Positions 1-64,000 of a stretch of 64,000 nt of DNA are shown piece after piece (position 1 is the first letter of the stretch; each line of letters begins with the position of its first letter). A program made the translations under genes and the position numbers. The stretch lies in the sequence record NC_041917.1; one strand, given 5' to 3'. The notes below the pieces were generated by a model that made no database searches, had not been told where the DNA came from, and worked only from the letters and a program-made list of their open reading frames with translations.

Positions 1-282
1 AAGAACTACTTTATTGTACTAAATCTAGTGTATAAAATCATTGAATTCAATACTGCTAAAATTGAAGGTACTATTACTAAAGAACAATGGTGCACGTACT
101 GTACTAACTTCTTAACGTTTATTGATGATAATTTCTCTAAAACACAAGCAGAACTTATTGTACACGCAGTACGTACTTTCACAGATGCAAACGTTAATAT
201 CGCTTACTCTGAAGTTCCAGTATTCAAAACCTTTGTTCAGAAATATGGTCCACTTCTTCGTAAAGTACGTACAATGAAATAA
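1..282 (+). CDS. 3' end of a gene truncated by the window edge; possibly a MoxR-like AAA+ ATPase
   Basis: Frame 1 is open from base 1 (KNYFIVLNLVYKII...) to the stop at 282. The product is inferred only from the usual pairing of MoxR-type ATPases with the downstream VWA/metallopeptidase gene. Confidence 0.4.
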   Translation, partial: KNYFIVLNLVYKIIEFNTAKIEGTITKEQWCTYCTNFLTFIDDNFSKTQAELIVHAVRTFTDANVNIAYSEVPVFKTFVQKYGPLLRKVRTMK

Positions 283-288
283 TACTTT

Positions 289-311
289 AGGGGCATATAT
301 TGCCCCTTTTT
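289..311 (+). terminator. Intrinsic terminator
   Basis: aggggca-tatat-tgcccct followed by tttt just after the stop at 282. Confidence 0.7.
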
Positions 312-324
312 CTATGAGGTTTAT

Positions 325-1665
325 ATGAAAAAAGAAAAACATGTAGTATCTGATGCATATGCAGCAGAATGCTACGAACGAATTATTATTGCACGTACTG
401 CGATGATTATGTCTTGTCCATTCTTTGGAATTTTAGCTGCAAGACTACAATTAGTACCTAATAATACATGGTGCCGAACTTTAGCAGTAGATGGTAAACA
501 CTTGTACTATAATGTTGAATTCATTATGGGAGTTGAAGACCCTGCTCGTCGTCAAGAGTATGAAGACAAACTTAAAGAATCTATTGATGGGATTACTGCT
601 GAACAAATCAACGATGCATTAAATGGATTAACACATCAAAATCTATTGGCTGCAATTTGTCATGAGATTCTACACTGTGCATATAACCACTTTTTAAGAC
701 GTGGTGCACGTAATCCTAAAAAATGGAACCAAGCAGCAGACTACGCCATTAACCAAATCATAAATCGTGATAAAAAAATGGGTGAAATTAAGAAGTCGTG
801 GTTATTCAAAGCTGAATACGATGGAATGACTGCTGAAGAAATCTATAATATCTTAGAAGAACAAGATGGAAACGGTGGTGGTGGTTCTGGTTCTGGTGGT
901 GGAACTTTAGATCAACATGACATTCCACAACAAGGCGATGATCAATCAGATGATGGGGACAATTCTGGAATACCAGGATATAGTACTGAAGAATTAGAAT
1001 CATTCATGGAAGAATTTAAAGATGCTATGCTAAGTGCGGCAATGGCTGAAGGTGCACCACAAGAAATTCGTGCAATGATCGATGAGTATAAAACTCCTAC
1101 TATTGATTGGCGTTCTAAACTAAATCGTACTATTCGTTCATTGATTAAAAATGATGTATCTTATATGATGCCATCTCGCCGTTCATGGAGTACTGGTTTT
1201 GGAAGTACTGGTTCATATTATGGTTCTCCAATTTATCCAGGTTTAAAACCAGATTTGGATATTGATATTTGTGTTGCATTAGATGCATCAGGTAGTATTA
1301 GTACTGAAATGCTAAAAGATTTCTTGTCTGAAGTAATGGGTATGACTAAACAGTTTAGTCAGTTCAAGATTCGAATCTTGACATTTGATACTAATGTTTA
1401 TACAGTACGAGATTACGTTACTGGTGAAGAACGTAAGATTCTTGAATATCCAGTAACTGGTGGCGGTGGTACGTTATTCACTGCTGTTTGGGATCATATG
1501 AAGGAAGATGACTATTGTCCAAAACAATTAGTTATGTTCACTGATGGAGAACCTTGGGGTTCTTGGGGAGATCCTACATATTGTGATACTTTATTCATTA
1601 TTCACTCGAATCCAAAGATTGAAGCACCATTTGGTACTACAGTGCATTATGAATTAGAGAAGTAA
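325..1665 (+). CDS. Putative metallopeptidase + VWA-like domain protein (DUF2201-type)
   Basis: HExxH motif (ICHEILHCAYNH); Gly-rich/acidic linker; C-terminal VWA MIDAS elements DASGS, GGGGT and FTDG. Confidence 0.85.
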   Translation: MKKEKHVVSDAYAAECYERIIIARTAMIMSCPFFGILAARLQLVPNNTWCRTLAVDGKHLYYNVEFIMGVEDPARRQEYEDKLKESIDGITAEQINDALNGLTHQNLLAAICHEILHCAYNHFLRRGARNPKKWNQAADYAINQIINRDKKMGEIKKSWLFKAEYDGMTAEEIYNILEEQDGNGGGGSGSGGGTLDQHDIPQQGDDQSDDGDNSGIPGYSTEELESFMEEFKDAMLSAAMAEGAPQEIRAMIDEYKTPTIDWRSKLNRTIRSLIKNDVSYMMPSRRSWSTGFGSTGSYYGSPIYPGLKPDLDIDICVALDASGSISTEMLKDFLSEVMGMTKQFSQFKIRILTFDTNVYTVRDYVTGEERKILEYPVTGGGGTLFTAVWDHMKEDDYCPKQLVMFTDGEPWGSWGDPTYCDTLFIIHSNPKIEAPFGTTVHYELEK

Positions 1666-1678
1666 CAATACTAAATAA

Positions 1679-1701
1679 AAGGTCGCTAGGATGGCGGCCT
1701 T
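1679..1701 (+). terminator. Hairpin / probable terminator
   Basis: aaggtcgct-aggat-ggcggcctt, a 9 bp stem with two G-U pairs in + sense RNA. Confidence 0.55.
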
Positions 1702-1708
1702 AATCTTT

Positions 1709-2950: not shown

Positions 2951-3524
2951 AATATCTAATATGATGGATCAGTTCGAAAATGTATGTTTCAGTGGCGGGG
3001 CAGCGGGTGCTGACCGCCTTTTTGGTTTGTGGGCTGCACAAAATGGACATGAAGAAGTCCATTTTTCATTTAAGGGTCACAAAGCACATGTTCCACCTGA
3101 AACTGTTTTAGAACTCCCACTCGATTTATTAACAAGTACTGAAATTATACAAAAATTAAAAGTTGCTAACAAGTCTCTTGGAAGAAGTGTTCCTAGATTT
3201 GGATACGTTTATAATCTACTTGCTCGTAATAGTATGCAAGTATATAGTACTGAACGTGTGTATACAATGGGAATTTTAATTTCTCCTACACAACTTGATG
3301 GTGGTACTGCTTGGGCGGTACAAATGTACTTAGATCAAGAATCTGAGACAAAAGAAATTTATCATTACGACATTGTTGATAAAAAGATATATTCGTATAA
3401 TAATGTATTAAAACAATTCGTAGAAGTACAAACTGTACCAACACCACATGGAAAATGGACAGGTATTGGGACACGCCGAGCTACACAAGAAGATTTAGAA
3501 GCATTTGCTTCAAAATTTGAGTAA
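2937..3524 (+). CDS. Probable SLOG-superfamily (YspA/DprA-like) nucleotide-binding protein
   Basis: SGGAAGAD, LARN and GGTAWAV motifs in SLOG order. Confidence 0.6.
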   Translation: MTLTEISNMMDQFENVCFSGGAAGADRLFGLWAAQNGHEEVHFSFKGHKAHVPPETVLELPLDLLTSTEIIQKLKVANKSLGRSVPRFGYVYNLLARNSMQVYSTERVYTMGILISPTQLDGGTAWAVQMYLDQESETKEIYHYDIVDKKIYSYNNVLKQFVEVQTVPTPHGKWTGIGTRRATQEDLEAFASKFE

Positions 3525-3530
3525 TTAAAT

Positions 3531-3878
3531 ATGACAGATGATGAATTAGAAAGTTTTCGAATTGATACCTATAATGAAGGGTATGAAGAAGGAAAAGAAT
3601 ATGGCTATGAATGTGGGATGGATGATGGTGATGCAGCAGGTGCAGAACGCATTCGAAAAGAATTAGAATATGAACATGAAAAAGCCCTAGAGCGTTCCTA
3701 CAAAGATGGATTCAATGAAGCTGAAGATAAGTATGATAGAGAAATTTCTTATCTTCGTTCTAATTCTGAACAAGCAATTAATTCGTTGAATTCCAAAATT
3801 AAGGATTTGAAACGAATGTTATACAATCTAAGGAAGGAAAATGCAACAATTACTAGATCTATACAAAAAAGTACTTGA
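3531..3878 (+). CDS. Hypothetical protein with GxxxG repeats and a coiled coil
   Basis: EGYEEGKEYGYECG segment; helical C-terminus. Confidence 0.65.
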   Translation: MTDDELESFRIDTYNEGYEEGKEYGYECGMDDGDAAGAERIRKELEYEHEKALERSYKDGFNEAEDKYDREISYLRSNSEQAINSLNSKIKDLKRMLYNLRKENATITRSIQKST

Positions 3879-4770
3879 ATTTGGTGAACTTAGTACTGAC
3901 CGTACTGGTGTAGGTACATTAAAATTGGTTGGACAAACCATGAGATTTAATCTACAAGAAGGTTATCCAGCACCAACAACTAAACGTCTTGCTTGGAATG
4001 CAATGTCATCCGAATTGATTTGGTTTCTTGAAGGGTCACATGATGAACGAAGATTGTGTGAAATTTTACATGGTACTCGCGATCCTTCTAAGAAAACTAT
4101 TTGGACGGCAAATTATGAAAATCAAGGTATTTCATTGGGATACACTGATGGGAATCTTGGTCCAGTATATGGTAAACAATGGCGGTTTTGGAAAGATACA
4201 GTACTTTCTAGTGATCCGTATGAAATTGAGAAATATAAACAAAATGGGTATAATGTAGTTGATAGTACTTTCTTCCACGGTGTTATTATGGAACGAAATA
4301 CTGACCAGATTGCAGTACTTATTGATGGATTGAAAAATAATCCAGATTCTCGTCGCCACATCTTGACTGCATGGAATGTTGGTGAATTGGATAAAATGGC
4401 ACTTCCTCCATGCCACTGTTTCTCACAATTCTTTGTTAATAATGGAAAACTATCATGTATTCTTTATCAACGAAGCTGTGATCTATTTTTGGGTGTACCA
4501 TTCAACATCGCATCATATTCACTACTAACACATATGTTAGCACAAGTATGTGGATTGGAAGTTGGTGAATTTGTTTGGATGGGCGGGGATGTTCATATCT
4601 ATCAAAATCATGTAGAACAAGTTAAAGAACAGCTAAAACGTGAACCACGTGAACTGCCTAAATTGTGGATGGATACTAGTATTACCAAAATTGAAGATTT
4701 CAAAATGGATTCTTTCAGATTGGAAGGTTATAATCCAGATGGTGTAATTAAAGCACCAATGGCAGTATAA
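3841..4770 (+). CDS. thyA: Thymidylate synthase (ThyA/Td type)
   Basis: DRTGVGT, GPVYGKQWR, catalytic LPPCH, YQRSCDLFLGVPFNIASY, GDVHIY and C-terminal APMAV. Confidence 0.98.
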   Translation: MQQLLDLYKKVLEFGELSTDRTGVGTLKLVGQTMRFNLQEGYPAPTTKRLAWNAMSSELIWFLEGSHDERRLCEILHGTRDPSKKTIWTANYENQGISLGYTDGNLGPVYGKQWRFWKDTVLSSDPYEIEKYKQNGYNVVDSTFFHGVIMERNTDQIAVLIDGLKNNPDSRRHILTAWNVGELDKMALPPCHCFSQFFVNNGKLSCILYQRSCDLFLGVPFNIASYSLLTHMLAQVCGLEVGEFVWMGGDVHIYQNHVEQVKEQLKREPRELPKLWMDTSITKIEDFKMDSFRLEGYNPDGVIKAPMAV

Positions 4771-4773
4771 AAT

Positions 4774-4800
4774 AAAAAGGAGCCATAGGCTCCTTTTTTT
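4774..4800. terminator. Bidirectional intrinsic terminator
   Basis: aaaaaggagcc-ata-ggctccttttt between convergent genes. Confidence 0.9.
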
Positions 4801-4801
4801 G

Positions 4802-6748
4802 TTATTGATATTGTACAATTACCCGACCATTAAATCGTAAATCTGGCGATGCAGGTACTGATAGTACTGCGTTGGTAGGTGAAATAACCACACTATCAAC
4901 TTCAACAGGACTATAATTCACCCCACTTAATTCTTGCACAGAAACTTGTTGTATATTGGCATTAGTAATAGTAAATGTATAGTAAGAACCATTTAATACC
5001 CAATTAGCTGTAGTAAATGTTGTAATAACTCCACCACCGGAACCAACAGTCGTCCATGTTCCATTTGATTTTTGGATTACAGTATTGCGTTGAGTACTGT
5101 AAGCAATCATCCCATCTTCACCTTTAGAATCATCAATTGGATTCATAACAGGTAATGCAAAACCATTTCTTGTCATTTTAGCAACAACTTGTGGTGATGC
5201 ACCATTATATAATATGAAATTATAATTTCCAGTACTTCCAGTTTGACTAAATGTTAAACCATTGGTTTCATCTATGGTTGTTGGTGAATTGGCTGAATTA
5301 AATCTAATAGTTGAACCAGTGAATATTAGTAAATTTGCTGAATTTTGTAGATATGCATCAGCAGCAAATGTTGAAATTCCATTAAATCTACTTTGAGAAT
5401 TGACAACAACTTTATCACCAGATGCAGAGGCATCGTTACCTAATGTAGTATTTCCATTAACGGTATGATTTCCAGTAACTACTACGTTACCATTAAAAGT
5501 ACTTAAACCCTGTGATAGACTTACATTAACTGCACTATTTGATACAAAATCTATTTTATTTCCAGTTACATTTATACCTAATGCAGTATTACCAGTAGCA
5601 GAAAATAGAATATTTGGTGCAGCAGCAGTACCAGTACTTGGATATAAAATTAATTGTGTAGGTGAAACCCGTAATCTTTCAACACCACTTGCAGAGAAAC
5701 CAATACTTCCGGTAGCTGGTCTAAAGATACCAGTACTTGTCTCTGACCATTTAGTAGGATCATTTCCTGGATTCGTGGTAGGGTTAAATGGGTTGCTGTT
5801 AAACGCAATAGCAGGGGCAGCAGCGGTTCCATAAACAACACCGAAGCGACCATCACCTATTCCTCCATCATCGTACATGGAGTCTCCTGTGCGGCGTAGA
5901 CCGTCTTGCACAAGGTTATCTATAATAGTTTGTACTGTACCAGCACTTGAAGAAAATGCTCTACCTGAAGTAGTTGCATATGTTCTATCGAATGAAACTG
6001 CACCAGCACTTATACTAACACGACTTTGACGTAAACGTGTTTGTTTGGAACCATCTGAAATAATCCAATCACCATCCGTCAACGCTAATTCAGAAGACTT
6101 ATCTACATCAGTAGTAAATGCGGCTGTTAACGTTGTGTCAGTAGATAATGATGTTAAACCTTCATGACCAGTACTTGGAATACTTGCTGTAATTATTCTT
6201 CCAAAAGCGGCAATAACAACTTTACCAGTACTTGGGTTCATTGGATCGGTATCAACATAGTACTTAATTTGAATCCAATTTCCTTGTCCACTTGGATTAG
6301 TAGGTATAAAGGTAACAGTTGGTGTTGTTGGGTTATTTGCTTTAAAGTGTGCCTGTGCTGCATCATATAGGCCACGCACAATATAGTACTGTCCTGAATT
6401 AGCTGCAATAGGTGCAGGAAGTTTATCATATTGTCCACCCAATGGTGGATCAATGTCATCAGTTAATGGTGAATATGTACCAATATACTGCATACCACTT
6501 GTTACTGAATCTGGTAATTGGGATGTAAGTAATTGTCCATTTTCATCTAAATTTGCGAAACGACGATAACTCACTGAGCCATCAGTAAACTCTAGAACAC
6601 CTTCAAATGATTTCCATTCTGAGTTATATCGAATCATACCTGCTCTTTCAGCAGATGTTGTTTGTTTTGTTGGTGCTTTAGGTAGTTCTAAAAAGTATTG
6701 ACTTTCAATTATAACACCCTCTGCACCTTTAATTCTAGTAGCACTCAT
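4802..6748 (-). CDS. Virion structural / fibre-associated protein
   Basis: 648 aa rich in S/T/G/N; two G-x-I-x-Y-N...W fibre motifs; late-promoter motif upstream; C-terminal domain shared with 14951..15811. Confidence 0.65.
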   Translation of the reverse strand: MSATRIKGAEGVIIESQYFLELPKAPTKQTTSAERAGMIRYNSEWKSFEGVLEFTDGSVSYRRFANLDENGQLLTSQLPDSVTSGMQYIGTYSPLTDDIDPPLGGQYDKLPAPIAANSGQYYIVRGLYDAAQAHFKANNPTTPTVTFIPTNPSGQGNWIQIKYYVDTDPMNPSTGKVVIAAFGRIITASIPSTGHEGLTSLSTDTTLTAAFTTDVDKSSELALTDGDWIISDGSKQTRLRQSRVSISAGAVSFDRTYATTSGRAFSSSAGTVQTIIDNLVQDGLRRTGDSMYDDGGIGDGRFGVVYGTAAAPAIAFNSNPFNPTTNPGNDPTKWSETSTGIFRPATGSIGFSASGVERLRVSPTQLILYPSTGTAAAPNILFSATGNTALGINVTGNKIDFVSNSAVNVSLSQGLSTFNGNVVVTGNHTVNGNTTLGNDASASGDKVVVNSQSRFNGISTFAADAYLQNSANLLIFTGSTIRFNSANSPTTIDETNGLTFSQTGSTGNYNFILYNGASPQVVAKMTRNGFALPVMNPIDDSKGEDGMIAYSTQRNTVIQKSNGTWTTVGSGGGVITTFTTANWVLNGSYYTFTITNANIQQVSVQELSGVNYSPVEVDSVVISPTNAVLSVPASPDLRFNGRVIVQYQ

Positions 6749-6779
6749 TTAATTTCCTCAGATAATGGGTTATATTCTG

Positions 6780-6786
6780 TATTTAT
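6780..6786 (-). promoter_or_regulatory. T4-like late promoter (ATAAATA)
   Basis: Matches the gp55-dependent TATAAATA core upstream of a structural gene. Confidence 0.65.
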
Positions 6787-6815
6787 CCAGTACTCCAAAA
6801 ATAAAAGCTATCTTA

Positions 6816-7319
6816 TTAATCAGAAGTGTAGAAAATTCTAACGATTGGACATAGTGTAGAATTTGTAACACTACAATTGTAATAAGTATTTTGAATATAC
6901 ACTTTATTTGGATTTGGACTCATTGATACAAACATATCATATCCTGACGTTACACCTACTGTAGTTGAAACATCCACGCTATTATTTGTAGTACTATCAG
7001 TGTATACGTAACATCCCAATGGTATAAATGAAACAATGTTTACATTAGTTTCGTTGGTAAAAATATCTTTCATTCTTATAAGCATACCTGCATTATTCGA
7101 ACGAATTGTCAAATCATGATTATCTTGTTGGAAAACATGAAGTACTTTAACATCTTTTGATTTTAATATTAATGATGGTGGTGAATACAATCCATTATCA
7201 TGATTTGAAATTGAGTTTCCAGAATCAGGAGAAATAATCACTGGCGGCAAATTTCCGATAAGTGAACCAGTGAATTCTACATCTCCATCAACTTTTATAT
7301 CAGTTTTTATATTATACAT
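6816..7319 (-). CDS. Small fibre/adhesin-like protein with the shared MYNIKTD N-terminal module
   Basis: First 17-18 aa identical to 7333..7884; ISPDSGN...DNGLY motif also present in 7951..9618. Confidence 0.6.
   Translation of the reverse strand: MYNIKTDIKVDGDVEFTGSLIGNLPPVIISPDSGNSISNHDNGLYSPPSLILKSKDVKVLHVFQQDNHDLTIRSNNAGMLIRMKDIFTNETNVNIVSFIPLGCYVYTDSTTNNSVDVSTTVGVTSGYDMFVSMSPNPNKVYIQNTYYNCSVTNSTLCPIVRIFYTSD
7267..7319. repeat. 53 bp perfect direct repeat, copy 1 (copy 2 at 7832-7884)
   Basis: ccagtgaattctacatctccatcaacttttatatcagtttttatattatacat, identical base by base. Confidence 0.95.
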
Positions 7320-7332
7320 AATTTACTCCGTT

Positions 7333-7884
7333 TTAATTTGATGTTGTTATAAAATAATCAATAACATATGAAACATCCCAACCATCAGATCTTGAATAAT
7401 ATGTATTTGAATTAACGTTAAACAATTTAGTAGCTATTCCTTGGATAAAAATAATAGAAACTAACGTACTACAAAATATACCATTAACAATAGAAGTATT
7501 TTCATATGTAGTAATATTATATGGTAAAAAATTATTATTATCATCACATGGAATCATACTTAAATAGGCATTTAAAACTTTCATTTTGTTAGTAGATGAT
7601 GGGTATGGGCCACCTCCATCAAAATAGTCATCCCCGATGGTTATTTTAAAAATTTCATTAGAACCTTGAATAATATGTGCTCTAGGTGATGATATATTCG
7701 ATGATTCATTTGTTGGTAAATTTACCCCGAATGTCTTTAATGTAGTTGTTAATTCATTATTAGAATTAATGGATATTAAATTATTACCTGTTTTAGAAAC
7801 TTTAGCACCTGGTATATTGCCAATCAGTTCCCCAGTGAATTCTACATCTCCATCAACTTTTATATCAGTTTTTATATTATACAT
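7333..7884 (-). CDS. Small fibre/adhesin-like protein with the shared MYNIKTD N-terminal module
   Basis: Start reassigned from 7914 to 7884 (GAGGA SD; paralogous N-terminus). Confidence 0.6.
   Translation of the reverse strand: MYNIKTDIKVDGDVEFTGELIGNIPGAKVSKTGNNLISINSNNELTTTLKTFGVNLPTNESSNISSPRAHIIQGSNEIFKITIGDDYFDGGGPYPSSTNKMKVLNAYLSMIPCDDNNNFLPYNITTYENTSIVNGIFCSTLVSIIFIQGIATKLFNVNSNTYYSRSDGWDVSYVIDYFITTSN
7832..7884. repeat. 53 bp perfect direct repeat, copy 2
   Basis: Identical to 7267-7319. Confidence 0.95.
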
Positions 7885-7890
7885 TGTGTA

Positions 7891-7945
7891 TATCCTCATA
7901 AACGAAAAGGCCAATAATGAATATTGACCTTGTATTTAATTGAAA
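7891..7945 (-). promoter_or_regulatory. Late promoter + hairpin + SD module, copy A
   Basis: On the minus strand: TAAATA (7933-7938), stem 7908-7930 with one G-U pair, U-tract, then GAGGA; homologous to 9626-9680. Confidence 0.65.
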
Positions 7946-7950
7946 TTTGA

Positions 7951-9618
7951 TTACGCAAAGGCATTATTAACTGTTGTACCAACGAGCAAAGCTACTGTAA
8001 TATTTGCTTGATTAGGCACTCCACCACCAACTGGATATGGTGAATCAGTAACAACATCAAATCCTAAAGCGGGAGTTCCGTGGATAAATGTAGTGATAGT
8101 AACCGTAATAGTACTAGCAGTAGTGTTAGTAATTTGACCTGATACCGTTGTTGGTATTGGGTTTCCAGCAGAATCTAGATAATACTGTTGTAATTGGGTT
8201 TGTAATGAACTATATAAACCAACATTATTATATCTTGTAACACCTGTTGGGTTTGTCATTGATATAGTTGTTTTAATTTTCATGCTTCCATTTGGATAAA
8301 CAGTTGCTGAACTGAATAATGCTCCACTTGATGCAATTGCAAATTTAGGAATAACAGCATGATTACCAGCAACATACAATCCTTTATTAGTAGTTGAACT
8401 TAATTTAAGAATATTATATTGTTCAGTACTTAAATTGACACGAATATCGGTGTTTTTTGGGTTGCTATTATTTTGTGAACGGTATATACTGTCATCTGGC
8501 AGTAATTGAATGCTAACTGGACGAACAAATAAACCAGGATTATCACCAACGATTAAGTTTGTTAATTGGTTTTGGTCATCAGCACTAACAACAACATCAC
8601 TTACTGGAGCAGGTGCTACATATAAACCATTATCATGTTTTACTAATGCATTATTAGTATCAGTTGATATGAGTACGGGAGAATCTAAAGTTAATACTTC
8701 TTTCCAGTTCCATGTTTTATCATCAGTTGGCTGATTGTTTTCGACATTCAAGAATAGTCTACCATCTGTATCGGATGCTAAAGAAAATCCAGAATATGAA
8801 CCAATTACTTGATTCTTATAACCTGATTGGAACCATATTACCGTTCCGTCTTTTTGACTTGGTAATGATGCTGGCATACCAATACCAGAACTTTTATATC
8901 CATATACAGATGAACCACCGTAACCAATACTAATATCATCAGTTAAAACGCCACCAGTTTGTACGAAAATATTAGACAAATACTCAGTACTGTTAACAGT
9001 TTCCCAACTAGTAGGCATTGCATTTAATGTACCAGTTCTAGTCTTAATTTGATTTTTAATGCTAGAACCATATTGGTCAGAACCATAACCAGTTTGTACA
9101 ACATATGTGGTTCCATTGGTTGAGTACTGCACTACTTTTAAAATTACATCACTAGTTGATGCGAATGGTGCATGATATTGATATTTTTCAGTACTAGTTG
9201 TAAGTCCAACAACAGAATATGTTCCAGTACTTGTTAATGTATCATAATCTGTTTTTTCTGTAATAAAAATCATTTCAGAATCTGATGAGGCATATAGACC
9301 ACCATCTGAGTTTATAATTAGTTTATTGTTTGGTTCTTCACTAAGTTTAGCGGAAAGTGTTACACTATATCCAGTTCCTTCTTGTGCAGATAATCCTTCT
9401 CCGGCCATAACGGATGATGATGGAGGAATAACTTTAAGTTCACCTTCAATTAAAAATAAACCATTTTCACCTTCGGCTATGTTAATTTTTAATGGATCTT
9501 CAACAGTTCCAGTTCCTGCGATTCCATCAGTCGTGTTTGTTGGGGGTAATTTCCCAAATAACTCACCACTGTATGTTACATTACCTATAACATTTATATC
9601 TGTTAATATATTGTACAT
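7951..9618 (-). CDS. Tail fibre-like protein
   Basis: MYNILTDINVIGNV N-terminus; repeated (L/V)SxDxxNxL...GLYV units; DYDTLTSTGTY...QTGY...W domain typical of fibre shafts. Confidence 0.65.
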   Translation of the reverse strand: MYNILTDINVIGNVTYSGELFGKLPPTNTTDGIAGTGTVEDPLKINIAEGENGLFLIEGELKVIPPSSSVMAGEGLSAQEGTGYSVTLSAKLSEEPNNKLIINSDGGLYASSDSEMIFITEKTDYDTLTSTGTYSVVGLTTSTEKYQYHAPFASTSDVILKVVQYSTNGTTYVVQTGYGSDQYGSSIKNQIKTRTGTLNAMPTSWETVNSTEYLSNIFVQTGGVLTDDISIGYGGSSVYGYKSSGIGMPASLPSQKDGTVIWFQSGYKNQVIGSYSGFSLASDTDGRLFLNVENNQPTDDKTWNWKEVLTLDSPVLISTDTNNALVKHDNGLYVAPAPVSDVVVSADDQNQLTNLIVGDNPGLFVRPVSIQLLPDDSIYRSQNNSNPKNTDIRVNLSTEQYNILKLSSTTNKGLYVAGNHAVIPKFAIASSGALFSSATVYPNGSMKIKTTISMTNPTGVTRYNNVGLYSSLQTQLQQYYLDSAGNPIPTTVSGQITNTTASTITVTITTFIHGTPALGFDVVTDSPYPVGGGVPNQANITVALLVGTTVNNAFA

Positions 9619-9625
9619 CTGTTAT

Positions 9626-9680
9626 TATCCTCATAAAAATAAAGGCCAATATTTGCATATTGGCCTGGATATTTATTGAA
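9626..9680 (-). promoter_or_regulatory. Late promoter + hairpin + SD module, copy B
   Basis: ATAAATA (9670-9676), perfect 10 bp stem aggccaatat/atattggcct (9643-9666), U-tract, GAGGA. Confidence 0.7.
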
Positions 9681-10319
9681 TTATAGTATTTCGTCATCCC
9701 ATTTTGCCGCATCACGAACTGTGTCGTAATCTTCAGCAGCAGAGATAGCAGCTTTAATTGTACGTTCTTTAATGTATAAAGAGCTAGTATAATCAAATAA
9801 TTCTTTTACTAATTGCTTAAATTTAACTAAATCGAATGGAACTAAAACACCATCTACTGTTTCAAGTTCAATTGAACTTGGGAAGTTAGATTCATCTATT
9901 AACGCAGCACTGATAAACAACTGGATATTAGCACGTGAAGTAGACCCTGCATTATATGAATGACCATCGAAGGTAAAATCATTATAATACATGGAATCAC
10001 GTTTAGCAGTAACACGACCAAGAAGGTCGGTTTTAATATCATCTAATGGCATACGTTCATAAATGTAAGTATTAGTAACTTCAACTGCATCTTCATCGAA
10101 AGTAACAACCTTTTCTTTGAAAATCATGAACTCACCTGTGTTTTGATAAACATCATTTTGAGTCCAGAAACCTTCATCGCGGCGAGTATCCAAGTCTAGC
10201 TTGGATATGTCGCCATATGTATTACCGGTTTTATTACCACGAATATTGATTGGGTAGGTAATTGTTTTAAGAATTACCCAATCGCCTGATTCATTTTTAA
10301 CTACTGATAAGTAAATCAT
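9681..10319 (-). CDS. Probable tail fibre assembly chaperone (DUF4376-like C-terminus)
   Basis: KRDSMYYNDFTFDGHSYNAGSTSRANI...TVDGVLVPFD pattern; lies directly downstream of the long fibre gene. Confidence 0.6.
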   Translation of the reverse strand: MIYLSVVKNESGDWVILKTITYPINIRGNKTGNTYGDISKLDLDTRRDEGFWTQNDVYQNTGEFMIFKEKVVTFDEDAVEVTNTYIYERMPLDDIKTDLLGRVTAKRDSMYYNDFTFDGHSYNAGSTSRANIQLFISAALIDESNFPSSIELETVDGVLVPFDLVKFKQLVKELFDYTSSLYIKERTIKAAISAAEDYDTVRDAAKWDDEIL

Positions 10320-10334
10320 CTTTATCTCCTACTA

Positions 10335-13300
10335 TTATGGACGTTGTGCAATGAACACATCATATTTAGAACCAATACCACAGTACACTACTTGACAGAT
10401 GCTTACAGCGTTTGGATCAGTATTAACTTCACCACCAATGATTGCATAAGCAGTATCCCATGTTACAGTATGTCCACCAGTAGCATCTTGTGTTACATAG
10501 ATGAACCATGAACCTGCACCATTCACACCAGTAATTGGTTGAATTGAGGTATTTGCAGTAACGTTTACGTTATAAACGTTTGAAGTACCATCTGGAGTCC
10601 AAGTTGCAGTACTTACTGTTTCAGCAGCATGTTGAGCAACAAAGTATGTTCCAGTTTTGAATGATGTTGTTGTTAAGTTAGATAAATCAGCAGTTAAAGT
10701 ACCAGTGATTGTAATATTCTTAACAGTAGTATCACCAATAAAGTTACTTGTAGCATTAACAGTTAATGTATCTGCCGCCGCATCACCAATAACAGTGTTA
10801 CCATTAGCGGTTAATGCACCAGTAATTGTAGCACTATTCAATGTAGCTAGACCAGAAGTACTCAAAGTGGTTGCAGATGTTGCAGCTAATGTAGTTGCAC
10901 CAGTTACACCTAATGTAGTGGTGATTGAAGCACTGTTTAGTATTGCTAATCCTGAAGTACTTAGAGTACCAGTAATTGCAGTATTTCCAGCATTCAATCC
11001 AGCTAATGTACTTAAACCAGTTACACCTAATGTAGTTCCTACTGTTACACCAGCAGATGTAGTTACTGATTTAAAAGTTACATCAGAATTGGTTTGATTC
11101 AATGTACCATTAATTACACCAGTTACTGTAAAGTCACCATTAGTTACTACGTTACCGTTAACTTGTAGGTTGTTATTTGTACTTGATGGTGCACCAATGA
11201 TTGCTGTTGCAGCAGTTAGAGAAGTTGCAGCGGTCAATGAACCAGCAGAACTAATATTTCCTGAAGCAGTTACGTTACGTGGTGAAATATCACGTGATGT
11301 TAAGTCAATCTGTGCGTTTATAATACCAGTTACATCTAAATCACCAGTGATGATTGTATCACCAAATACATTTAGAACTTTATCAGTATCAGCAGTACCA
11401 GTACCAACTTGTAATGCTTGAATCTTAGAAGTACCAGATCCATTAACAGTTAGAGTACCAGTCATTGTACTATTACCAGTTACACCTAAAGTAGTTGTAA
11501 TAGAGGCACTATTCAATGTAGCTAGACCAGAAGTACTTAGAGTACCAGTGATTGCATGGTTACCAGAATTTACAGCAGCAAGTGTTGTAATACCAGTTAC
11601 ACCTAAAGTAGTTCCTACAGAAATTGCACCAGTTGTGGTTACTGAAGCAACATTCAACGCAGCAGAACCTAAGTTTAATCCACCAGCAGGGGTGAATGAA
11701 CCATTAACAGTTACATCTCCAGCAAAAGTACTTGTAGCATTAACAGTTAAAGTATCAGAGCTTGCATTACCTAGAGTAATATTACCATTTGCAATTAATG
11801 CACCAGATACAGTAGCACTATTTAAAGTAGCTAACCCATTAGTAGTTAAAGTACTTAGAGTTGTTGCTCCAGATACACCTAAAGTTGTAGTTACCGCAGC
11901 ACTATTTAAAGTAGCTACACCAGAAGTACTTAGAGTACTTACAGAAGTATTTCCAGTTACACCTAATGTTCCGGCAATTGTTGTATTTCCAGAGATTTTT
12001 GGAGCACCTGTGATAACACCAGTAGTTAGAATTAAATCTGCACCAACGGTAGTTTTACCAGTACTTTCTAATGTTGCAGCTACTAGATTTGTTGCACTTA
12101 AATCAAATGCACCATCAACAGTTAGGTCACCAACAACATGAGCATTACCAGAAGATGTTAATGATTTAACAGTTACATCAGCAGTACTTAAATCTACCGC
12201 ACCAGGGGTTAGAGTACCAGATACTGATAAGTTACCAGTAATTGCAGTATTCTTAGCGATTGCTACAGTTGCATTCGTTGAAGTAATATTTCCGTTAAAT
12301 GTTGCAGCACCAGTTACTGTTGCAGCAGCGAAAGTCGCTGTACCGGTTCCAGTTAGTGTACCGATACTAGCAGTTGCAAGAGTACTTGTACCAGTAGCAT
12401 TTAATGTAGTTATATCAGCAGTATTGATTGTTGCAGTAACACTTTGCAATACTGGTAATGTGTTTGTATTAACATTATCAGTAGCTGTGAATGTAAGAGC
12501 CGCAACACTAGCTGAACTTAAACTAATTTGTCCACCAACAATTACGTCACCATCAAAAGTTGCTTGTTCCGTAGTATGAATAGATTTAGCTTCAATATCT
12601 ACATCTGATAGATCTAAACCACCAGCAAGAATTAATGTTCCACCAACTGTTAAATTACCAGAGGTAGTTACTGGAGAAGTAAAGTTTACTGCATTAGTAC
12701 TATTTCCGATACTTGAAGTTACTAAAGAACCCGCAGTAGCTACACCAGTTACGGTTGCAGATGCTAATGTTGCTAATCCAGAAGTACTTAATGTAGAAGC
12801 GGAAACAGCACCTAATGTACTTTGACCAGTTACGCCTAAAGTGGTTGTAACTGTAACTTTATTAGGAGCAATATCTAAACCATCCACATCAGCAACTACA
12901 GCAACGCCAGTTGTTGTACCAGTTACTACAAGATCGTGAATAGTTGTTGTTCCTGTGCTTCCACCGAATGAAGTATTACCATCAACGGTTAATCGTCCAC
13001 CAATAACTGCGTTATTTGTTACTGCTAATGCAGTATTTGGACCAGTTAATGATGCTCCAGCACCTAAGAAATTACCTGTCGCACTAACATCACCAGTAGA
13101 AGATATAGAACCAGAGTTTAGTGTTCCACTAATTACGGTATTTTTACCAATTGCAACATTTGTGTTAGTAGAAGTGATAGATCCGTTTACAGTTAGAGAA
13201 CCAGTACTTTCTACGGTAGCACCCTTAATTGATGTTGTTGCATTTACAGATTTTGGAGCAATATCTAAACCATCAACATTTGCTTCAGCCGTTACACCAG

Positions 13301-50443: not shown

Positions 50444-50472
50444 TGGAACGAATTAAAAATATTTGGTATAAT
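50444..50472 (+). promoter_or_regulatory. Early/middle-type promoter TGGAAC-N14-TGGTATAAT facing an ORF-free region
   Basis: Perfect copy of the motif. Confidence 0.85.
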
Positions 50473-50477
50473 AAGAT

Positions 50478-51180: not shown

Positions 51181-51206
51181 AAAAAAACCAGCAACTAGTG
51201 CTGGTT
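51181..51206 (-). terminator. Intrinsic terminator of the tail chaperone operon
   Basis: aaccagca-actag-tgctggtt with an A7 tract on + (U7 on -). Confidence 0.85.
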
Positions 51207-51420
51207 ATGATTTTTTGTTTTCACGTTTAATCTTTTTGTTATATTGCTTCACCATCAAATCTTTGTCATTCACTGGCATATTCAAAAGCATTTCATATGA
51301 AGTATTAGGTATATGAACTGCAACTTCCATTAAAGAATTTTTAATTTCTTCGCAGTTGAAACGCAATTCAGATATTTCCTTCATTACTTCTTCTGGTTCT
51401 GAGATGAGAAGCCTTGAACG
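51205..51420 (-). CDS. Downstream tail/baseplate assembly ORF: a -1 frameshift extension of the upstream gene, or a 59 aa protein from ATG 51384
   Basis: Frame is open from 51462; T_TTT_TTC at 51426-51420; TAATG overlap at 51386-51382. Confidence 0.6.
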   Translation of the reverse strand, partial: RSRLLISEPEEVMKEISELRFNCEEIKNSLMEVAVHIPNTSYEMLLNMPVNDKDLMVKQYNKKIKRENKKS

Positions 51421-54491: not shown

Positions 54492-56237
54492 ATGAGTTGG
54501 AAACGACATATGACAATGGGGCGTTCGAAAATTTCGAAGGATACCCGTAACAATTCGACACCAATACAGTCTTCAGGGGCGAAAACTAATTTCGCCTCTT
54601 ACTTACCTGCTGTATACAATGGAATGTCAAACCGTATTGATCGTTATAGACAATATGACCAAATGGATCAAGATCCAGAAATTCGAACTGCACTGAATAT
54701 TATCGCAGATTTTTGTACTCAAAGTACTAAAGATTATGGATTGCCATTTCAGATACAGTACAAAGATACAATGGGTGACACTGAAGTTACTACATTGGAA
54801 GATAGATTAGAATCATGGTCTGATCAGAACCAATTTAAAATAAGAATTTACGATATTATTCGTGGTATTTTGAAATATGGTGATCAGTTCTTTGTTCGTG
54901 ATCCAGAAACATTTGAATGGTATTGGGTAAACCCAATGAATGTTGATAAAGTAGTAGTAAATGAAAGTACTGGTAAAAATCCAGTAATTTATTATATTCG
55001 TGATGTTTCCTTAAACATCAGAGATAAAGTAATGAGTAATTTACAACTAGGATTTGATAAAATGGCATATCCTGGTTCATTACCTAATACATTAGCTGGT
55101 GCTGGTTCACAATACGGTTCAGTTGGTGGTGCTGGCGGTGGTGCAGGTGCAGATAGTTCCAATCCATTCGGTACTAATGGTCAATTGGATGTTTTACCAG
55201 TTGCAGCGGAGCATGTTATTCACTTATCTCTAAACACTGGACAAGATCCGTTCTGGCCTTTTGGTACTAGTATATTAGAAAATATTTTTAAAGTATATAA
55301 ACAAAAAGAATTGTTAGAAGATAGTATAATTATCTATCGTGTACAACGTGCACCAGAACGTAGGGTATTTAAAATTGATGTTGGTGATATGCAACCACAC
55401 CAAGCGATGGCATTCGTTGAACGTGTAAAAAATGATATACACCAACGTAGAATACCATCAAATAAAGGTGGAAGTACTTCATTAATGGATGCAGCTTATA
55501 ACCCATTAAGTATTTTAGAAGACTATTTCTTCCCACAAACCGCAGATGGTCGTGGTTCATCGGTAGAAACACTACCTGGTGGTGATAACTTAGGTCAAAT
55601 TGATGACTTACGTTATTTTAATAATAAATTAATTCGTGGATTACAAATTCCAGCATCATATCTACCAATGGGTCCAGATGATGGTGGTGTAGCACTATTT
55701 GGTGATGGTGCAACTCAAGCTATGGCAAGTGAATTACGTTTTAATAATGAATGTATGCGTTACCAACGTATTATATCTCGTATTTTTGATGATGAATTCA
55801 AACGTTATATGTTAAAAAATGGATATAACATTAGTGCATCTTCATTTGAAGTTACTTTTAATCCACCCATGAACTTTGCAGCGAATCGTAAAGCTGAAAT
55901 GGATGCTAAGTTAATACAAACATATATGCCTCTAAATGATCTCAAATACTTCTCTAAACAGTTCATTATGAAGAAAATGGGCTTTGAACAAGATGATATT
56001 GTTGAGAATGAAAGATTATGGATGCAAGAAAATCCAGCGGCAGTACAAAATAGTCCACAAGAAGTTGATGGAGCAAATGCTGGTCTACAATCTGTTGGTT
56101 TAGAAGCACCAAATAATCCAGAAACTGATTTAGGTATGGATGAAAATGGGAACTTAGAAAGTGCCGATGCAGAATATCAAGAACAAACTGGTGGTCAAGG
56201 TGGATTTGACCCTAATAGTTTAGGTAATTCATTTTAA
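54492..56237 (+). CDS. gp20: Portal protein, T4 gp20-like
   Basis: LLEDSIIIYRVQRAPERRVFKIDVG and EDYFFPQTADGRGSSVETLPGG motifs. Confidence 0.95.
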   Translation: MSWKRHMTMGRSKISKDTRNNSTPIQSSGAKTNFASYLPAVYNGMSNRIDRYRQYDQMDQDPEIRTALNIIADFCTQSTKDYGLPFQIQYKDTMGDTEVTTLEDRLESWSDQNQFKIRIYDIIRGILKYGDQFFVRDPETFEWYWVNPMNVDKVVVNESTGKNPVIYYIRDVSLNIRDKVMSNLQLGFDKMAYPGSLPNTLAGAGSQYGSVGGAGGGAGADSSNPFGTNGQLDVLPVAAEHVIHLSLNTGQDPFWPFGTSILENIFKVYKQKELLEDSIIIYRVQRAPERRVFKIDVGDMQPHQAMAFVERVKNDIHQRRIPSNKGGSTSLMDAAYNPLSILEDYFFPQTADGRGSSVETLPGGDNLGQIDDLRYFNNKLIRGLQIPASYLPMGPDDGGVALFGDGATQAMASELRFNNECMRYQRIISRIFDDEFKRYMLKNGYNISASSFEVTFNPPMNFAANRKAEMDAKLIQTYMPLNDLKYFSKQFIMKKMGFEQDDIVENERLWMQENPAAVQNSPQEVDGANAGLQSVGLEAPNNPETDLGMDENGNLESADAEYQEQTGGQGGFDPNSLGNSF

Positions 56238-56292
56238 GGTTCATAAATAATATTGATTCGTTCAGTGAACGATTAGAATATAAGGATAGGTT

Positions 56293-56526
56293 ATGTTAGA
56301 CGAAATTTTTGAAGCTAAAGATGACTCTATGTACGACCCTGAAGATGATCAGACAGTATATAAGTTGACTGACACTCGAAAACCTAAATTGACATTACAA
56401 ATTCTCAACAACTTGAGAAAGTACAGAGAATTTAAAAAGAATGAAGCTGCTAAGCGTGACGCAGTGGTTGCGATAGTATATGCACAACCTTCTGGTGATG
56501 ATCAAGCTGGTGGTGGAATGATGTAA
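56293..56526 (+). CDS. Small prohead core-like protein (gp67/68 position)
   Basis: 77 aa; DTRKPKLTL...LRK motif; late motif ATAAATA at 56243-56249. Confidence 0.55.
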   Translation: MLDEIFEAKDDSMYDPEDDQTVYKLTDTRKPKLTLQILNNLRKYREFKKNEAAKRDAVVAIVYAQPSGDDQAGGGMM

Positions 56527-56535
56527 TTATTACGA

Positions 56536-56575
56536 AAAGTGCCATTTTTAAGCTTTTTTGAAAATGGTATTTTTC
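56536..56575 (+). terminator. Hairpin/terminator followed by late promoter ATAAATA (56582-56588)
   Basis: aaagtgccatttt/aaaatggtatttt, 13 bp stem with two G-U pairs. Confidence 0.5.
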
Positions 56576-56633
56576 TTACTAATAAATAATGACATACCAA
56601 AATAAATTTTTGTATATCTGTTTGGAGGATATA

Positions 56634-57509
56634 ATGGCAAATATTAAACTATTGCAAGAAGCTATCCAAGCTTTTGCTAATGGCAACAACGAAATCGCTG
56701 ATAAGAAAATGCGTAAATATTTCGTTGAGCAAGCTCAAGAAATTAATAAGAAACTTGAAGAAGAAATGGAATCAGAAGAAGAAGAAATGTGTGAAGACAT
56801 TAATTCTGATCCTGAAGAAAGCATGACTGATGAAGTCGGTTACAAGCTTGATGAAGAAGAAGAACTAGACGAAGGTATGTTTAGTCCTGATATTAATGCT
56901 GGTGGAAACGCAGTTAATATTGGTGGTGGTTCTGCTAATGGCGAAATGCAAATGGAAGAAGATGAACATCCTGAAGACAGTGAATCTGATTTCGAAGATG
57001 AAGGTTCTGAAGGTTCTGCGTCACCTGATGCTGACCAATGGGAATCAATCAAATCTGCATTCGAAGATCTAGAACGTATGTTCGATGAGATCGAAGGTGG
57101 TGACGGTGTTGAATTTGAAGATGATCAATCTGATGACTTTGGTGATGCTGAAGAATCTGAAGATGAATTCGGTGATGTTCAATTCGGTGATGAAAAAGTT
57201 GGTGAAGCTTTCCAAATGAAGAAAGTTGCAGCACCAGAAAAAACTGAAAAAGCTGGCGTAAACAAGAAGTCTGTAGTTGCACCTAATGCTAAATCTCCAG
57301 TAGATGGCGTTAAACCAGTAACTATTAAAGACGGTACTGTAGATGCTACTGATGATAAGTTTGAAAACTCAGATGCATTGGATGCAAAAGTAGAAGACCA
57401 TAATAATGTTATGGATAACGGTAAACACGTTATGAAACCTGCTAAGACTCCAAAAAATACTGCTGAGAAATCACGCTCACCATTACCAAAAAGTCAACCA
57501 AAAATCTAA
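56634..57509 (+). CDS. Acidic prohead core/internal scaffold protein
   Basis: Very E/D-rich body and basic tail; lies between portal and protease; GGAGG SD favours 56634. Confidence 0.6.
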   Translation: MANIKLLQEAIQAFANGNNEIADKKMRKYFVEQAQEINKKLEEEMESEEEEMCEDINSDPEESMTDEVGYKLDEEEELDEGMFSPDINAGGNAVNIGGGSANGEMQMEEDEHPEDSESDFEDEGSEGSASPDADQWESIKSAFEDLERMFDEIEGGDGVEFEDDQSDDFGDAEESEDEFGDVQFGDEKVGEAFQMKKVAAPEKTEKAGVNKKSVVAPNAKSPVDGVKPVTIKDGTVDATDDKFENSDALDAKVEDHNNVMDNGKHVMKPAKTPKNTAEKSRSPLPKSQPKI

Positions 57510-57531
57510 TGAAAAATGAAGGAGATCATTT

Positions 57532-58161
57532 ATGAGTATGCTTAGGGAATGGTCTTCATTCAATGATTCTAAAATAGTACTAGAGTACAAAGAGGATCAA
57601 TTAACTGGACGTAAGAATTGCTATCTTAAAGGGATAGCAATTCAAGCTGACCGTAGAAACTTAAATGAACGTGTTTATCCTTTTGCCGAAATTGCGAGAG
57701 CAGTAAATAATATGGCAGAAAGGATTTCAAAGGGAGAAAGCATTCTTTGTGAATGTGACCACCCGGAAACACTAACCGTTAATTTAGATAGAGTTGTTGG
57801 TATGATTACTAATGTATGGATGGAAGGTGCTAATGGTATGGCTACTATTATGCTTCTTGATACTACATTAGGAAAAGATATTAGAACTATGATCGAAAGT
57901 GGCGTTAAGTTAGGTGTTAGCTCACGTGGTTCAGGTAATGTTGACCATAATGGTGTTGTATCTGATTTTGAAATTGTAACTATTGACATTGTAGCACAAC
58001 CAAGTGCTCCAGATGCATATCCTCAAGCGGTATTTGAATCTCTGAATAGTAAGTACGGAGCACCTATGAATGGCACAAGCCGTGTGTTTGAGTCATCAAA
58101 AACTTCTTATAGTAAAGTTGATGATGAAATTCATCAATTTTTTAAGAATTTAAAAGGTTAA
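57532..58161 (+). CDS. gp21: Prohead core protease, T4 gp21-like
   Basis: LKGIAIQAD.RNLNERVYP, ECDHP, GVSSRGSG and DIVAQPSAPDAY motifs. Confidence 0.95.
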   Translation: MSMLREWSSFNDSKIVLEYKEDQLTGRKNCYLKGIAIQADRRNLNERVYPFAEIARAVNNMAERISKGESILCECDHPETLTVNLDRVVGMITNVWMEGANGMATIMLLDTTLGKDIRTMIESGVKLGVSSRGSGNVDHNGVVSDFEIVTIDIVAQPSAPDAYPQAVFESLNSKYGAPMNGTSRVFESSKTSYSKVDDEIHQFFKNLKG

Positions 58162-58204: not shown

Positions 58205-58230
58205 TATCAGTACTTTAAAGGAGAAAACAA

Positions 58231-63251: not shown

Positions 63252-63814
63252 TACCATGTACTGGAACGATAAAAGCATCAGATATTAATACTGAATTGGG
63301 AAGAACACCAACATCTATATTTCAAATTGGAAATACACCAGAAAGAACTCTTGCAGGTAAGCCATCTGGTTTGATAAAATTTAGTGATTTCTATTGTAAA
63401 TCATCTGCTGATCCGTTGCCTTGGTTCTTATATGAGGTACAGCAAACTGGTGGTCGTGGTGTAAACACAGACCCAGCAGTATTCCGTGTTATTGATGGTA
63501 GCTATTCTGTATTTTGGGGTGGTAGTAACGGTTGGTTGAAGTTTAACAATCACTTCACTGGTACTATTCGTCAAATTGAAGTTACTTGGAAATATTCTGG
63601 CAGAAATGGTGGTTGGCATGGTATAACTGTTTATGAACGTACCAATTCTGCAAGTACTTACAGATTAGGTAGCAATACGGGAATCCAAAAATTTGTTTTA
63701 GATGTTAACATACCAGCCGATCAAGAGATATGGTTGAATTGGTCTGGTGGTGGTGATCAGGGTGATGGTAACAACGTAGATTATGTAGCTATCACTAATG
63801 TAGTTTATTACTAA
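63248..63814 (+). CDS. Fibre-associated virion protein / putative tip adhesin
   Basis: GTIKASDINTELG...RTLAG.PSG.IKFSDFY N-terminus, commonly found after S74 fibres; ATGA overlap. Confidence 0.6.
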   Translation: MIPCTGTIKASDINTELGRTPTSIFQIGNTPERTLAGKPSGLIKFSDFYCKSSADPLPWFLYEVQQTGGRGVNTDPAVFRVIDGSYSVFWGGSNGWLKFNNHFTGTIRQIEVTWKYSGRNGGWHGITVYERTNSASTYRLGSNTGIQKFVLDVNIPADQEIWLNWSGGGDQGDGNNVDYVAITNVVYY

Positions 63815-63821
63815 AAATTTT

Positions 63822-63850
63822 TGGAACGACAAAAAAACATATGGTATAAT
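63822..63850 (+). promoter_or_regulatory. Early/middle-type promoter TGGAAC-N14-TGGTATAAT
   Basis: Conserved motif and spacing. Confidence 0.85.
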
Positions 63851-63853
63851 ATG

Positions 63854-63886
63854 AGCATCCTAACAAGGCGTTAGGGTGCTTTTTTT
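63854..63886 (+). terminator. Terminator hairpin overlapping the predicted transcription start
   Basis: agcatcctaac-aaggc-gttagggtgct followed by T6. Confidence 0.75.
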
Positions 63887-63902
63887 ATACATGGAGATAA
63901 TT

Positions 63903-64000
63903 ATGACCAAGAAGACTGAATCTAAGATCGAAGCACATGACCTAAATGATGCTCAACGTAAAAAGCTAAAAGATGGCTTGAATTCCGCTGTAGTTCAACT
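63903..64000 (+). CDS. 5' part of a gene truncated by the window end
   Basis: GGAG SD at 63893-63896; MTKKTESKIEAHDLNDAQRKKLKDG... is open to the edge. Confidence 0.7.
   Translation, partial: MTKKTESKIEAHDLNDAQRKKLKDGLNSAVVQ

Follow-up and report, generated by a model that had tools for sequence, protein, structure and literature searches.

The hexamer AGTACT occurs 1,072 times in the genome of Serratia phage BF, a Rak2-like jumbo myovirus (357,154 bp), against 121 copies expected, i.e., an 8.9-fold enrichment (Poisson z 87) which places it first among all 4,096 hexamers. We examined this word in a 64,000-nucleotide stretch corresponding to bases 124001–188000 of the BF genome (hereafter the window), across the complete genome, and in comparison with Pectobacterium phage CBB, phages phAPEC6 and K64-1, and the outgroup Pseudomonas phage PA5oct. 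Within the window, 154 copies of AGTACT were found where ~22 would be expected (~7-fold), scattered in genes on both strands at 10–26 sites per 8 kb. We propose that AGTACT is a selected docking word for a protein with two-fold symmetry, which would act both as an operator at early promoters and as a dense mark along the phage chromosome, and we give this proposal about an even chance of being correct.

A palindromic hexamer in large excess

A strong over-representation of the tetramer GTAC had been reported for the window in a sequence-only reading, and this excess was confirmed. GTAC is present 412 times in the window against 203 expected from base composition (2.03-fold; second-order Markov z 7.4), and 2,808 times in the BF genome against 1,125 expected (2.5-fold; Markov z 28), where it tops all 256 tetramers both by ratio and by z. 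The real unit proved to be sharper, i.e., the hexamer AGTACT, which is found about once per 330 bp of the BF genome and is contained in nearly all of its commonest 8-mers. Variants matching the word at five of its six positions (AGTACV and BGTACT) form a 2.2-fold halo around it (1,093 vs 496 expected), from which the excess of GTAC outside AGTACT mainly derives, and GTAC copies with neither flanking base of the word (BGTACV) are at 1.27-fold (643 vs 508 expected). Two other palindromes with the same core, GGTACC and CGTACG, have zero copies in the genome.

The excess is independent of coding sequence

In a simple open reading frame (ORF) map, BF holds 551 genes and is 90% coding, with ~90% of the genes on one strand. 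The highest AGTACT enrichment was associated with non-coding DNA (135 vs 11.5 expected, 11.7-fold), and coding copies were found in all three frames (462, 137, and 342). These 941 coding copies far exceeded two codon-aware null models, namely synonymous shuffling, in which protein and per-gene codon usage are kept (241 ± 14 expected; z 51), and codon permutation (131 ± 11 expected; z 77). An excess also persisted over a dicodon-chain model in the two frames in which the word spans three codons (137 vs 83 and 342 vs 197), even though this null already holds five of the six AGTACT letters on each side. The sequence-only reading, which had argued that the GTAC excess was not simply a codon effect and named its disappearance after codon and dicodon correction as a refutation, was thus borne out on this point, the excess surviving both corrections.

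The imprint of the word extends to the encoded proteins. Every one of the most over-represented dicodons in BF is a piece of AGTACT, and the codon pair AGT-ACT encodes 462 of the 777 Ser-Thr dipeptides (118 expected), whereas the reverse pair ACT-AGT is depleted (40 vs 76 expected). Ser-Thr dipeptides are themselves inflated (490 expected; for Thr-Ser, 499 were counted), as are Val-Leu dipeptides (800 vs 580 expected). Given these inflated dipeptides, together with the excess in non-coding DNA and over the codon-based nulls, the AGTACT pressure is exerted at the DNA level, with protein sequence altered in consequence.

Although AGT, ACT, GTA, and TAC are all common codons in BF (AGT being used for 32% of Ser, ACT for 48% of Thr, and GTA for 44% of Val), the idea that the excess is a mere by-product of amino acid, codon, or dicodon usage in Ser-, Thr-, Val-, and Tyr-rich structural genes is refuted and virtually impossible, because enrichment peaks in non-coding DNA, both codon shuffles and the dicodon chain are exceeded, ACT-AGT is depleted, and PA5oct, with equal G+C content and homologous genes, carries 15 copies of AGTACT against 97 expected.

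A trait of the enterobacterial Rak2-like clade

Next to BF, AGTACT was enriched in CBB (1,235 vs 127 expected, 9.7-fold), phAPEC6 (918 vs 120, 7.7-fold), K64-1 (940 vs 117, 8.0-fold), and Hallingskeid, of which a 27-kb stretch was counted (76 vs 9.1, 8.4-fold), as well as in ten jumbo contigs of the clade from IMG/VR (8–13-fold). By contrast, the word was at 0.15-fold in PA5oct, which has the same G+C content as BF and syntenic structural genes, and at 0.15–1.0-fold in T4, RsoM2USA, Phosso, and Xoo-sp13. Since five Rak2-like genomes are enriched while PA5oct and the other outgroups are not, AGTACT enrichment belongs to the enterobacterial Rak2-like clade.

Loss of palindromes is a familiar feature of phage genomes, and BF displays an extensive purge: 31 of the 64 possible palindromes of six bases are down to ≤2 copies (GATATC, 1; CTGCAG, GGATCC, and CTTAAG, 0), and the tetramer GCGC has 0 copies in 357 kb (158–308 expected). 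This purging is common to CBB, phAPEC6, and K64-1 (24–29 palindromes purged, GCGC at zero), and one palindrome is purged in PA5oct. AGTACT departs from the pattern of restriction-site avoidance, in which a palindrome is depleted, being 8.9-fold enriched. The opposite of BF was observed in unrelated viral contigs with distant Dam-family methylases, which avoid GTAC: five IMG/VR loci (L025, L033, L040, L041, and L044) displayed 2.3–2.7-fold GATC and 0.07–0.36-fold GTAC, and three more (L051, L055, and L056) had zero GTAC (32–44 expected).

Symmetry, placement, and turnover of the sites

The flanks of AGTACT carry ~0 information beyond positions −1 and +6, and a longer repeat or mobile element, e.g., one resembling repetitive extragenic palindromes (REP) or miniature inverted-repeat transposable elements (MITE), was rejected as the source of the word on this basis. 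At the two adjoining positions, a mirror-symmetric preference was found, G being disfavored at −1 (0.07) and C being disfavored after the word (H-AGTACT-D). This preference is sharpened to C…G, i.e., CAGTACTG, in phAPEC6 and K64-1 (E. coli and Klebsiella branches), and in K64-1 this extended word reaches 242 copies against 2.9 expected (83-fold). Such a mirror-symmetric preference suggests a dimer on duplex DNA, for which it would be expected. The two-fold symmetry of AGTACT itself likewise suggests recognition on duplex DNA by a symmetric protein; with ~90% of the genes on one strand, an RNA signal would need no palindrome.

Across the BF genome, gaps between AGTACT sites are Poisson-like (coefficient of variation 0.97), the longest being 2,532 bp against 2,519 bp expected from an exponential distribution, and no constraint toward regular spacing or clustering was found. 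The profile of the word is also flat at the borders of genes, starts and stops alike, and of the 1,072 copies only some tens are linked to promoters; a general promoter or terminator signal was accordingly rejected as the main cause of the excess.

Turnover of individual sites was evaluated on BLAST-based maps of a 43-kb syntenic block, in which BF sites were compared to all hexamers. AGTACT sites were conserved more often than hexamers at large in CBB (52% vs 29%) and phAPEC6 (33% vs 16%), and to the same degree in K64-1 (14% vs 14%). Throughout, each genome holds 76–102 sites in this block, and whole-genome totals in the four Rak2-like genomes lie between 918 and 1,235. Individual sites are thus mildly protected but replaceable, and it is their density that persists.

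Fixed positions in a class of early promoters

Enrichment of AGTACT varies along the BF genome, from 20-fold in the first 20 kb and 13-fold in the last 17 kb to 5–7-fold mid-genome, and non-coding DNA at the left end carries 10 copies per kb compared to ~2 per kb mid-genome. Position 1 of BF is homologous to the start of the 22.5-kb direct terminal repeat of CBB. In this terminal-repeat region, outside the window, ~11 predicted sigma-70-type promoters (BF 3351–16724) share one common design: an A-rich tract is followed by an AGTACT whose last T opens the −35 element (TTGACA or TTGCAA), and further downstream a second AGTACT precedes a G or T and the −10 sequence TATAAT. From start to start, the copies are separated by 20–21 bp, and pairs at 21 bp leave a −35/−10 spacer of 17 bp.

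Scanning with a strict form of this design (AGTACTT-N11-14-AGTACT-K-TA) yielded 13 matches in BF, 14 in CBB (7 unique, all inside the repeat), 3 in phAPEC6, 10 in K64-1, and 0 in PA5oct, while the reversed pattern, used as a control, had 0 matches in all genomes scanned. For 25 of 33 strict matches in the four genomes, an ORF with an ATG start was found on the same strand ≤200 nt from the −10 element, commonly at 20–60 nt and often preceded by a Shine-Dalgarno-like purine tract. Dual-AGTACT promoters are clustered in one early region per genome, which in BF and CBB is the terminal repeat. The positions of the word relative to −35 and −10 are fixed across four genera in which the surrounding sequence varies; in K64-1, for instance, both AGTACT copies stay the same while spacers differ between promoters. 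AGTACT is missing from the RpoD-like promoters tabulated for CBB; sigma-70 recognition can thus do without the word, which defines a subclass of promoters, as an operator would.

Several further observations concern the early region and the genome ends. The promoter table of the CBB paper does not contain the dual-AGTACT class. The final ~150 bp ahead of the direct terminal repeat contain a stack of four to five AGTACT copies (BF 357026–357142; CBB 355.6–355.9 kb), and the left genome end lies 12–13 bp beyond the last of them. A pair of copies 18 bp apart also forms the stem of a Rho-independent terminator (BF 9042–9065; CBB 10171–10208, Torf26 of the CBB supplement). Since the word is self-complementary, base pairing of this kind is open to any two copies that lie close together. 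Finally, the E. coli Chi octamer GCTGGTGG is found 30 times in BF against 1.3 expected from composition, including 25 on coding sense strands against 12.2 ± 3.2 under synonymous shuffling, and clusters near both genome ends in an apparently outward orientation (e.g., 6668–17956 on the top strand and 348537–351124 on the bottom strand).

A putative protein reading AGTACT

Among the options raised in the sequence-only reading was a dispersed binding site for a condensation, packaging, or repair protein. The dispersed site provides the best fit to a context-free palindrome kept by density and present at fixed promoter positions, while the three roles named for it are not specifically supported. 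The protein reading the word would probably be phage-encoded and peculiar to enterobacterial Rak2-like jumbo phages. As an operator, one AGTACT would abut the −35 element and a second would sit just upstream of −10, two helical turns apart, and these dual copies may mark a regulated subclass of early promoters (3–11 per genome). The word may also be a chromosome mark: the ~1,000 further copies, placed at random through genes and spacers, amount to ~20 times the density predicted by base composition for host DNA, and the putative protein may recognize or coat the phage chromosome by density rather than by position.

It is also possible, and we suggest this only tentatively, that the phage chromosome labels itself by sequence, the label being read by a phage protein that tells phage from host DNA. 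Such a protein would switch a class of early promoters and also coat, shield, or privilege the genome. The word would take the functional place of hypermodified bases, in sequence form, in phages that otherwise rely on the purging of restriction sites to survive.

A number of results weigh against a docking word read by a phage protein. Family searches in the five genomes returned no match to HU/IHF, Phd/YefM, or AbrB/MazE, the Vsr search only a weak sub-threshold match in PA5oct, and the search for a ScaI nuclease was blank, a weak result since controls were also blank. There are 122 BF proteins common to CBB, phAPEC6, and K64-1 that have no PA5oct homologue; Pfam scans of ~60 small clade-specific proteins detected no DNA-binding domain, the matches obtained being a ParE-like domain, an HNH nuclease, a zinc ribbon, and assorted enzymes, and many of these proteins lacked any recognizable family. 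The only annotated helix-turn-helix regulator of CBB, CBB_511, was rejected as a candidate, having no homologue in BF, phAPEC6, or K64-1. Likewise, a 193-amino acid ORF located behind a dual-AGTACT promoter in BF, CBB, and K64-1 had no family and no informative Atlas neighbor. The protein, if any, would then be among the unannotated proteins or encoded by the host.

Other objections are more general. A thousand extra sites would titrate a simple repressor, which makes the genome-wide role a conjecture, and a site of 6 to 8 bp is short for a specific binder. Promoter copies are found partly in duplicated cassettes, such that part of their identity reflects shared descent. Selection and a drive by biased conversion would lead to the same genome-wide statistics, and the case against methylation (see below) comes from relatives and relies on a motif going unreported, i.e., it is indirect for BF.

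One small locus of the early region was considered separately. An 80-amino acid ORF with a ParE-like toxin domain (BF 12013–12252; E = 9e-13) is kept in four Rak2-like genomes, and a 106-amino acid ORF lies upstream, with a terminator-like hairpin in between. As an antitoxin-type protein reading AGTACT, this 106-amino acid early protein received no support: a terminator separates the two genes, and it matches no recognizable family.

Alternative explanations

AGTACT could instead be read by a host factor confined to Enterobacterales and recruited to the early promoters and chromosome of the phage, which we regard as doubtful. The trait was found only in phages isolated on Enterobacterales and is missing from relatives infecting Pseudomonas, Ralstonia, Xanthomonas, and Sinorhizobium; host range cannot, however, be separated from phage clade, so that this restriction is not independent evidence. 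The word-bearing promoters are of the sigma-70 type and located in the early region; should they be active ahead of phage protein synthesis, an activator could only come from the host or be injected. A lead is provided by SlmA of E. coli, whose binding consensus is a 12-bp palindrome with an AGTACT core. Despite these identical central six bases, SlmA sites were rejected as an explanation: their outer bases are absent in BF, with 2 occurrences of the loose form GT.AGTACT.AC and 0 of the consensus 12-mer in 357 kb, and G, present at −1 in SlmA sites, is disfavored there in BF. We know of no other enterobacterial protein with an AGTACT site.

The sequence-only reading had also offered a phage-encoded methylase or base modification, and the corresponding explanation would be that a phage DNA methyltransferase or other modification acts on AGTACT or on the GTAC within it, the modified word being useful and hence kept or accumulated, like GATC where Dam is present. 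The methyltransferase search which that reading suggested detected two enzymes in BF among the families searched. The first belongs to the beta class and carries an SPPY motif; among solved structures its best relative is the N4-cytosine methylase M.PvuII, and it also has a weak match to a YhdJ-type model; the second is a 179-amino acid Dam-family methyltransferase with an NPPY motif. Searches of BF for the C5 and D12 (Dam) methylase families returned no match, and neither did a search for MT-A70 in the five genomes, although control genomes were also blank for the latter, making it a weak negative.

Some of this evidence favors modification. The Dam-family NPPY enzyme was found in each of the four AGTACT-rich genomes tested and not in PA5oct, even if these four genomes represent one clade, and BF additionally has the M.PvuII-like enzyme. 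A ScaI-type restriction site would moreover reach 1,072 copies only if protected or rarely restricted, and heavy methylation of virion DNA is mentioned, with data not shown, in the RaK2 paper. However, the beta-class gene is absent from phAPEC6 and K64-1, both of which are still 8-fold enriched, so this enzyme cannot explain the shared trait and was rejected as its cause. Distant homologues of the Dam-family enzyme are encoded on 38 other viral contigs with no AGTACT excess, several of which are rich in GATC. Nanopore sequencing of native versus amplified DNA identified GATC and CCWGG as modified motifs in Hallingskeid, and additionally TGCAT in Kaldavass, which is linked with Mimasvirus, the genus of CBB (PMC11780129). 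Neither AGTACT nor GTAC is among the reported motifs, two to three motifs being matched by two to three methylases (PMC11780129), while a modified AGTACT with ~1,000 sites should have been the most obvious of all. Protection would also explain tolerance of the word and not a 9-fold excess, and we estimate that shielding of a methylated C from deamination would contribute at most ~2-fold. With the beta-class enzyme missing from two enriched genera and AGTACT unreported for relatives, we consider methylation disfavored and unlikely to underlie the enrichment.

Alternatively, AGTACT may have spread through a non-adaptive drive, i.e., a context-dependent mutation bias or biased mismatch repair or gene conversion in highly recombining phages, which would leave most copies without function. 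Random placement, turnover at constant density, the ~2-fold halo of one-off variants, and the intrusion into protein sequence fit such a drive as well as selection, and very-short-patch repair is an E. coli precedent for a word bias driven by repair. Yet word biases due to repair in E. coli are small and not known to come near 9-fold or, for the 8-mer, 83-fold, and the Vsr search described above detected no Vsr-like endonuclease beyond the sub-threshold match in PA5oct. No single neighboring hexamer is depleted as a source of new copies. A drive cannot account for two invariant copies at set places within the promoters of four genera, nor for non-coding DNA being five-fold denser in AGTACT at the left end than mid-genome. 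This process is, in our view, also an unlikely one.

Finally, the word may be the preferred substrate of a phage enzyme, such as a type II topoisomerase cutting with a 4-base stagger across G-T-A-C, a primase whose start site would serve both strands, or a transient nickase. Such an enzyme would be consistent with a word for which only density matters and which works in either orientation, and the clade encodes its own topoisomerase II, a gyrase-like subunit, and primase-helicases (CBB paper). A 180-amino acid stand-alone HNH nuclease (BF 339280–339822) is also found in the four Rak2-like genomes and absent from PA5oct; this nuclease is no more than a conceivable enzyme for a short palindrome. 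Topoisomerases and primases, however, manage with loose or 3-base specificity and are not known to need enrichment, and a primase, which reads single strands, gives no reason for a palindrome. Strand-specific nicks were reported for another phage but no nick-related coverage loss for two Rak2-like jumbo phages (PMC11780129), and the fixed promoter positions would be left unexplained, making an enzyme substrate quite improbable.

AGTACT in the window

The window covers a structural-gene module, in which genes for baseplate, tail, portal, and recombination proteins were assigned from synteny with CBB. Three stretches counted by hand in the sequence-only reading were recounted, and its numbers were exact. 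Positions 1–1740 hold 20 GTAC (4 of them within AGTACT), 6 CATG, and 5 GATC; positions 41041–42320, inside the minus-strand gene for a baseplate hub or tail lysozyme (named by synteny with CBB_240), hold 13 GTAC (6 within AGTACT); and the non-coding positions 50470–51200 hold 8 GTAC (1 within AGTACT), 2 CATG, and 4 GATC.

Only one pair of AGTACT copies in the window, at 40835–40860, has the promoter-type spacing of 20 bp, and it was not taken as a promoter because it lies within coding sequence and has no good −10 element. Only 2 copies are located wholly between ORFs, at 6789–6794 and at 58209–58214, the latter at the start of a 2.2-kb stretch without sites. A second AGTACT-free stretch of 2.1 kb (55473–57575) covers the portal and prohead-protease genes (synteny with CBB); it is among the longest gaps in the BF genome, yet within the Poisson expectation. 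The window also includes ~0.9 kb without an ORF (50400–51400) between an endonuclease VII gene and the next structural gene, with a hairpin and T-run near 51187–51215 and no match to an Rfam family.

Comparison with known systems and significance

Short words occurring far above chance in both genes and spacers are known from cellular genomes, e.g., Chi in E. coli, the uptake sequences of Neisseria and Haemophilus, and GATC in Dam-bearing bacteria. Like AGTACT, these words are imposed on coding sequence, kept by density more than by position, and lineage-specific; each is specific to its reader protein, whereas that of AGTACT is only putative. AGTACT further differs from them in being viral, a perfect palindrome with no orientation or strand skew, and much denser, in standing out among ~30 purged palindromes, and in doubling as a promoter element.

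Operators of the YefM-YoeB type consist of pairs of TGTACA with a GTAC core, bound by small dimeric repressors. They resemble the AGTACT promoters in that 6-bp GTAC-centered palindromes occur in pairs overlapping the −35/−10 region, but the flanking bases are A..T in AGTACT instead of T..A, ~1,000 AGTACT copies lie outside promoters, a surplus not known from any toxin-antitoxin operator, and no Phd/YefM or AbrB/MazE domain was detectable in these phages by family searches. A possible functional analogue of the putative protein is TF1 of phage SPO1, an abundant HU-family phage protein which prefers phage (hydroxymethyluracil) DNA and is found on early promoters, and thus tells phage from host DNA. 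Unlike TF1, recognition of AGTACT would be based on sequence, the DNA appears unmodified, and no HU/IHF homologue was found.

Short, enriched, and clade-conserved motifs, in this respect similar to AGTACT, are also associated with nicks in phages tf, Rembedalsseter, and T5 (PMC11780129). Those motifs are asymmetric and strand-specific, number ~10 per genome, and mark nicks, whereas AGTACT is symmetric and 100 times commoner, with no nicks reported in the jumbo phages (PMC11780129). Full-text literature searches yielded no description of the AGTACT word in phages, and the CBB, RaK2, and Eneladusvirus papers are silent on it.

Taken together, one palindrome has been driven to ~1,000 copies across a widespread clade of giant enterobacterial phages, reshaping codon pairs and even protein sequences. 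AGTACT provides a simple diagnostic signature for this clade in metagenomes and a testable system for how a short word persists against coding constraints; expected fragments from ScaI or RsaI digestion would be ~330 bp or ~130 bp, respectively, unless the genomes are protected. If a protein does read AGTACT, this would represent a new kind of genome-wide recognition of phage DNA, and would offer a handle on early-gene control in phages for which most genes lack a known function.

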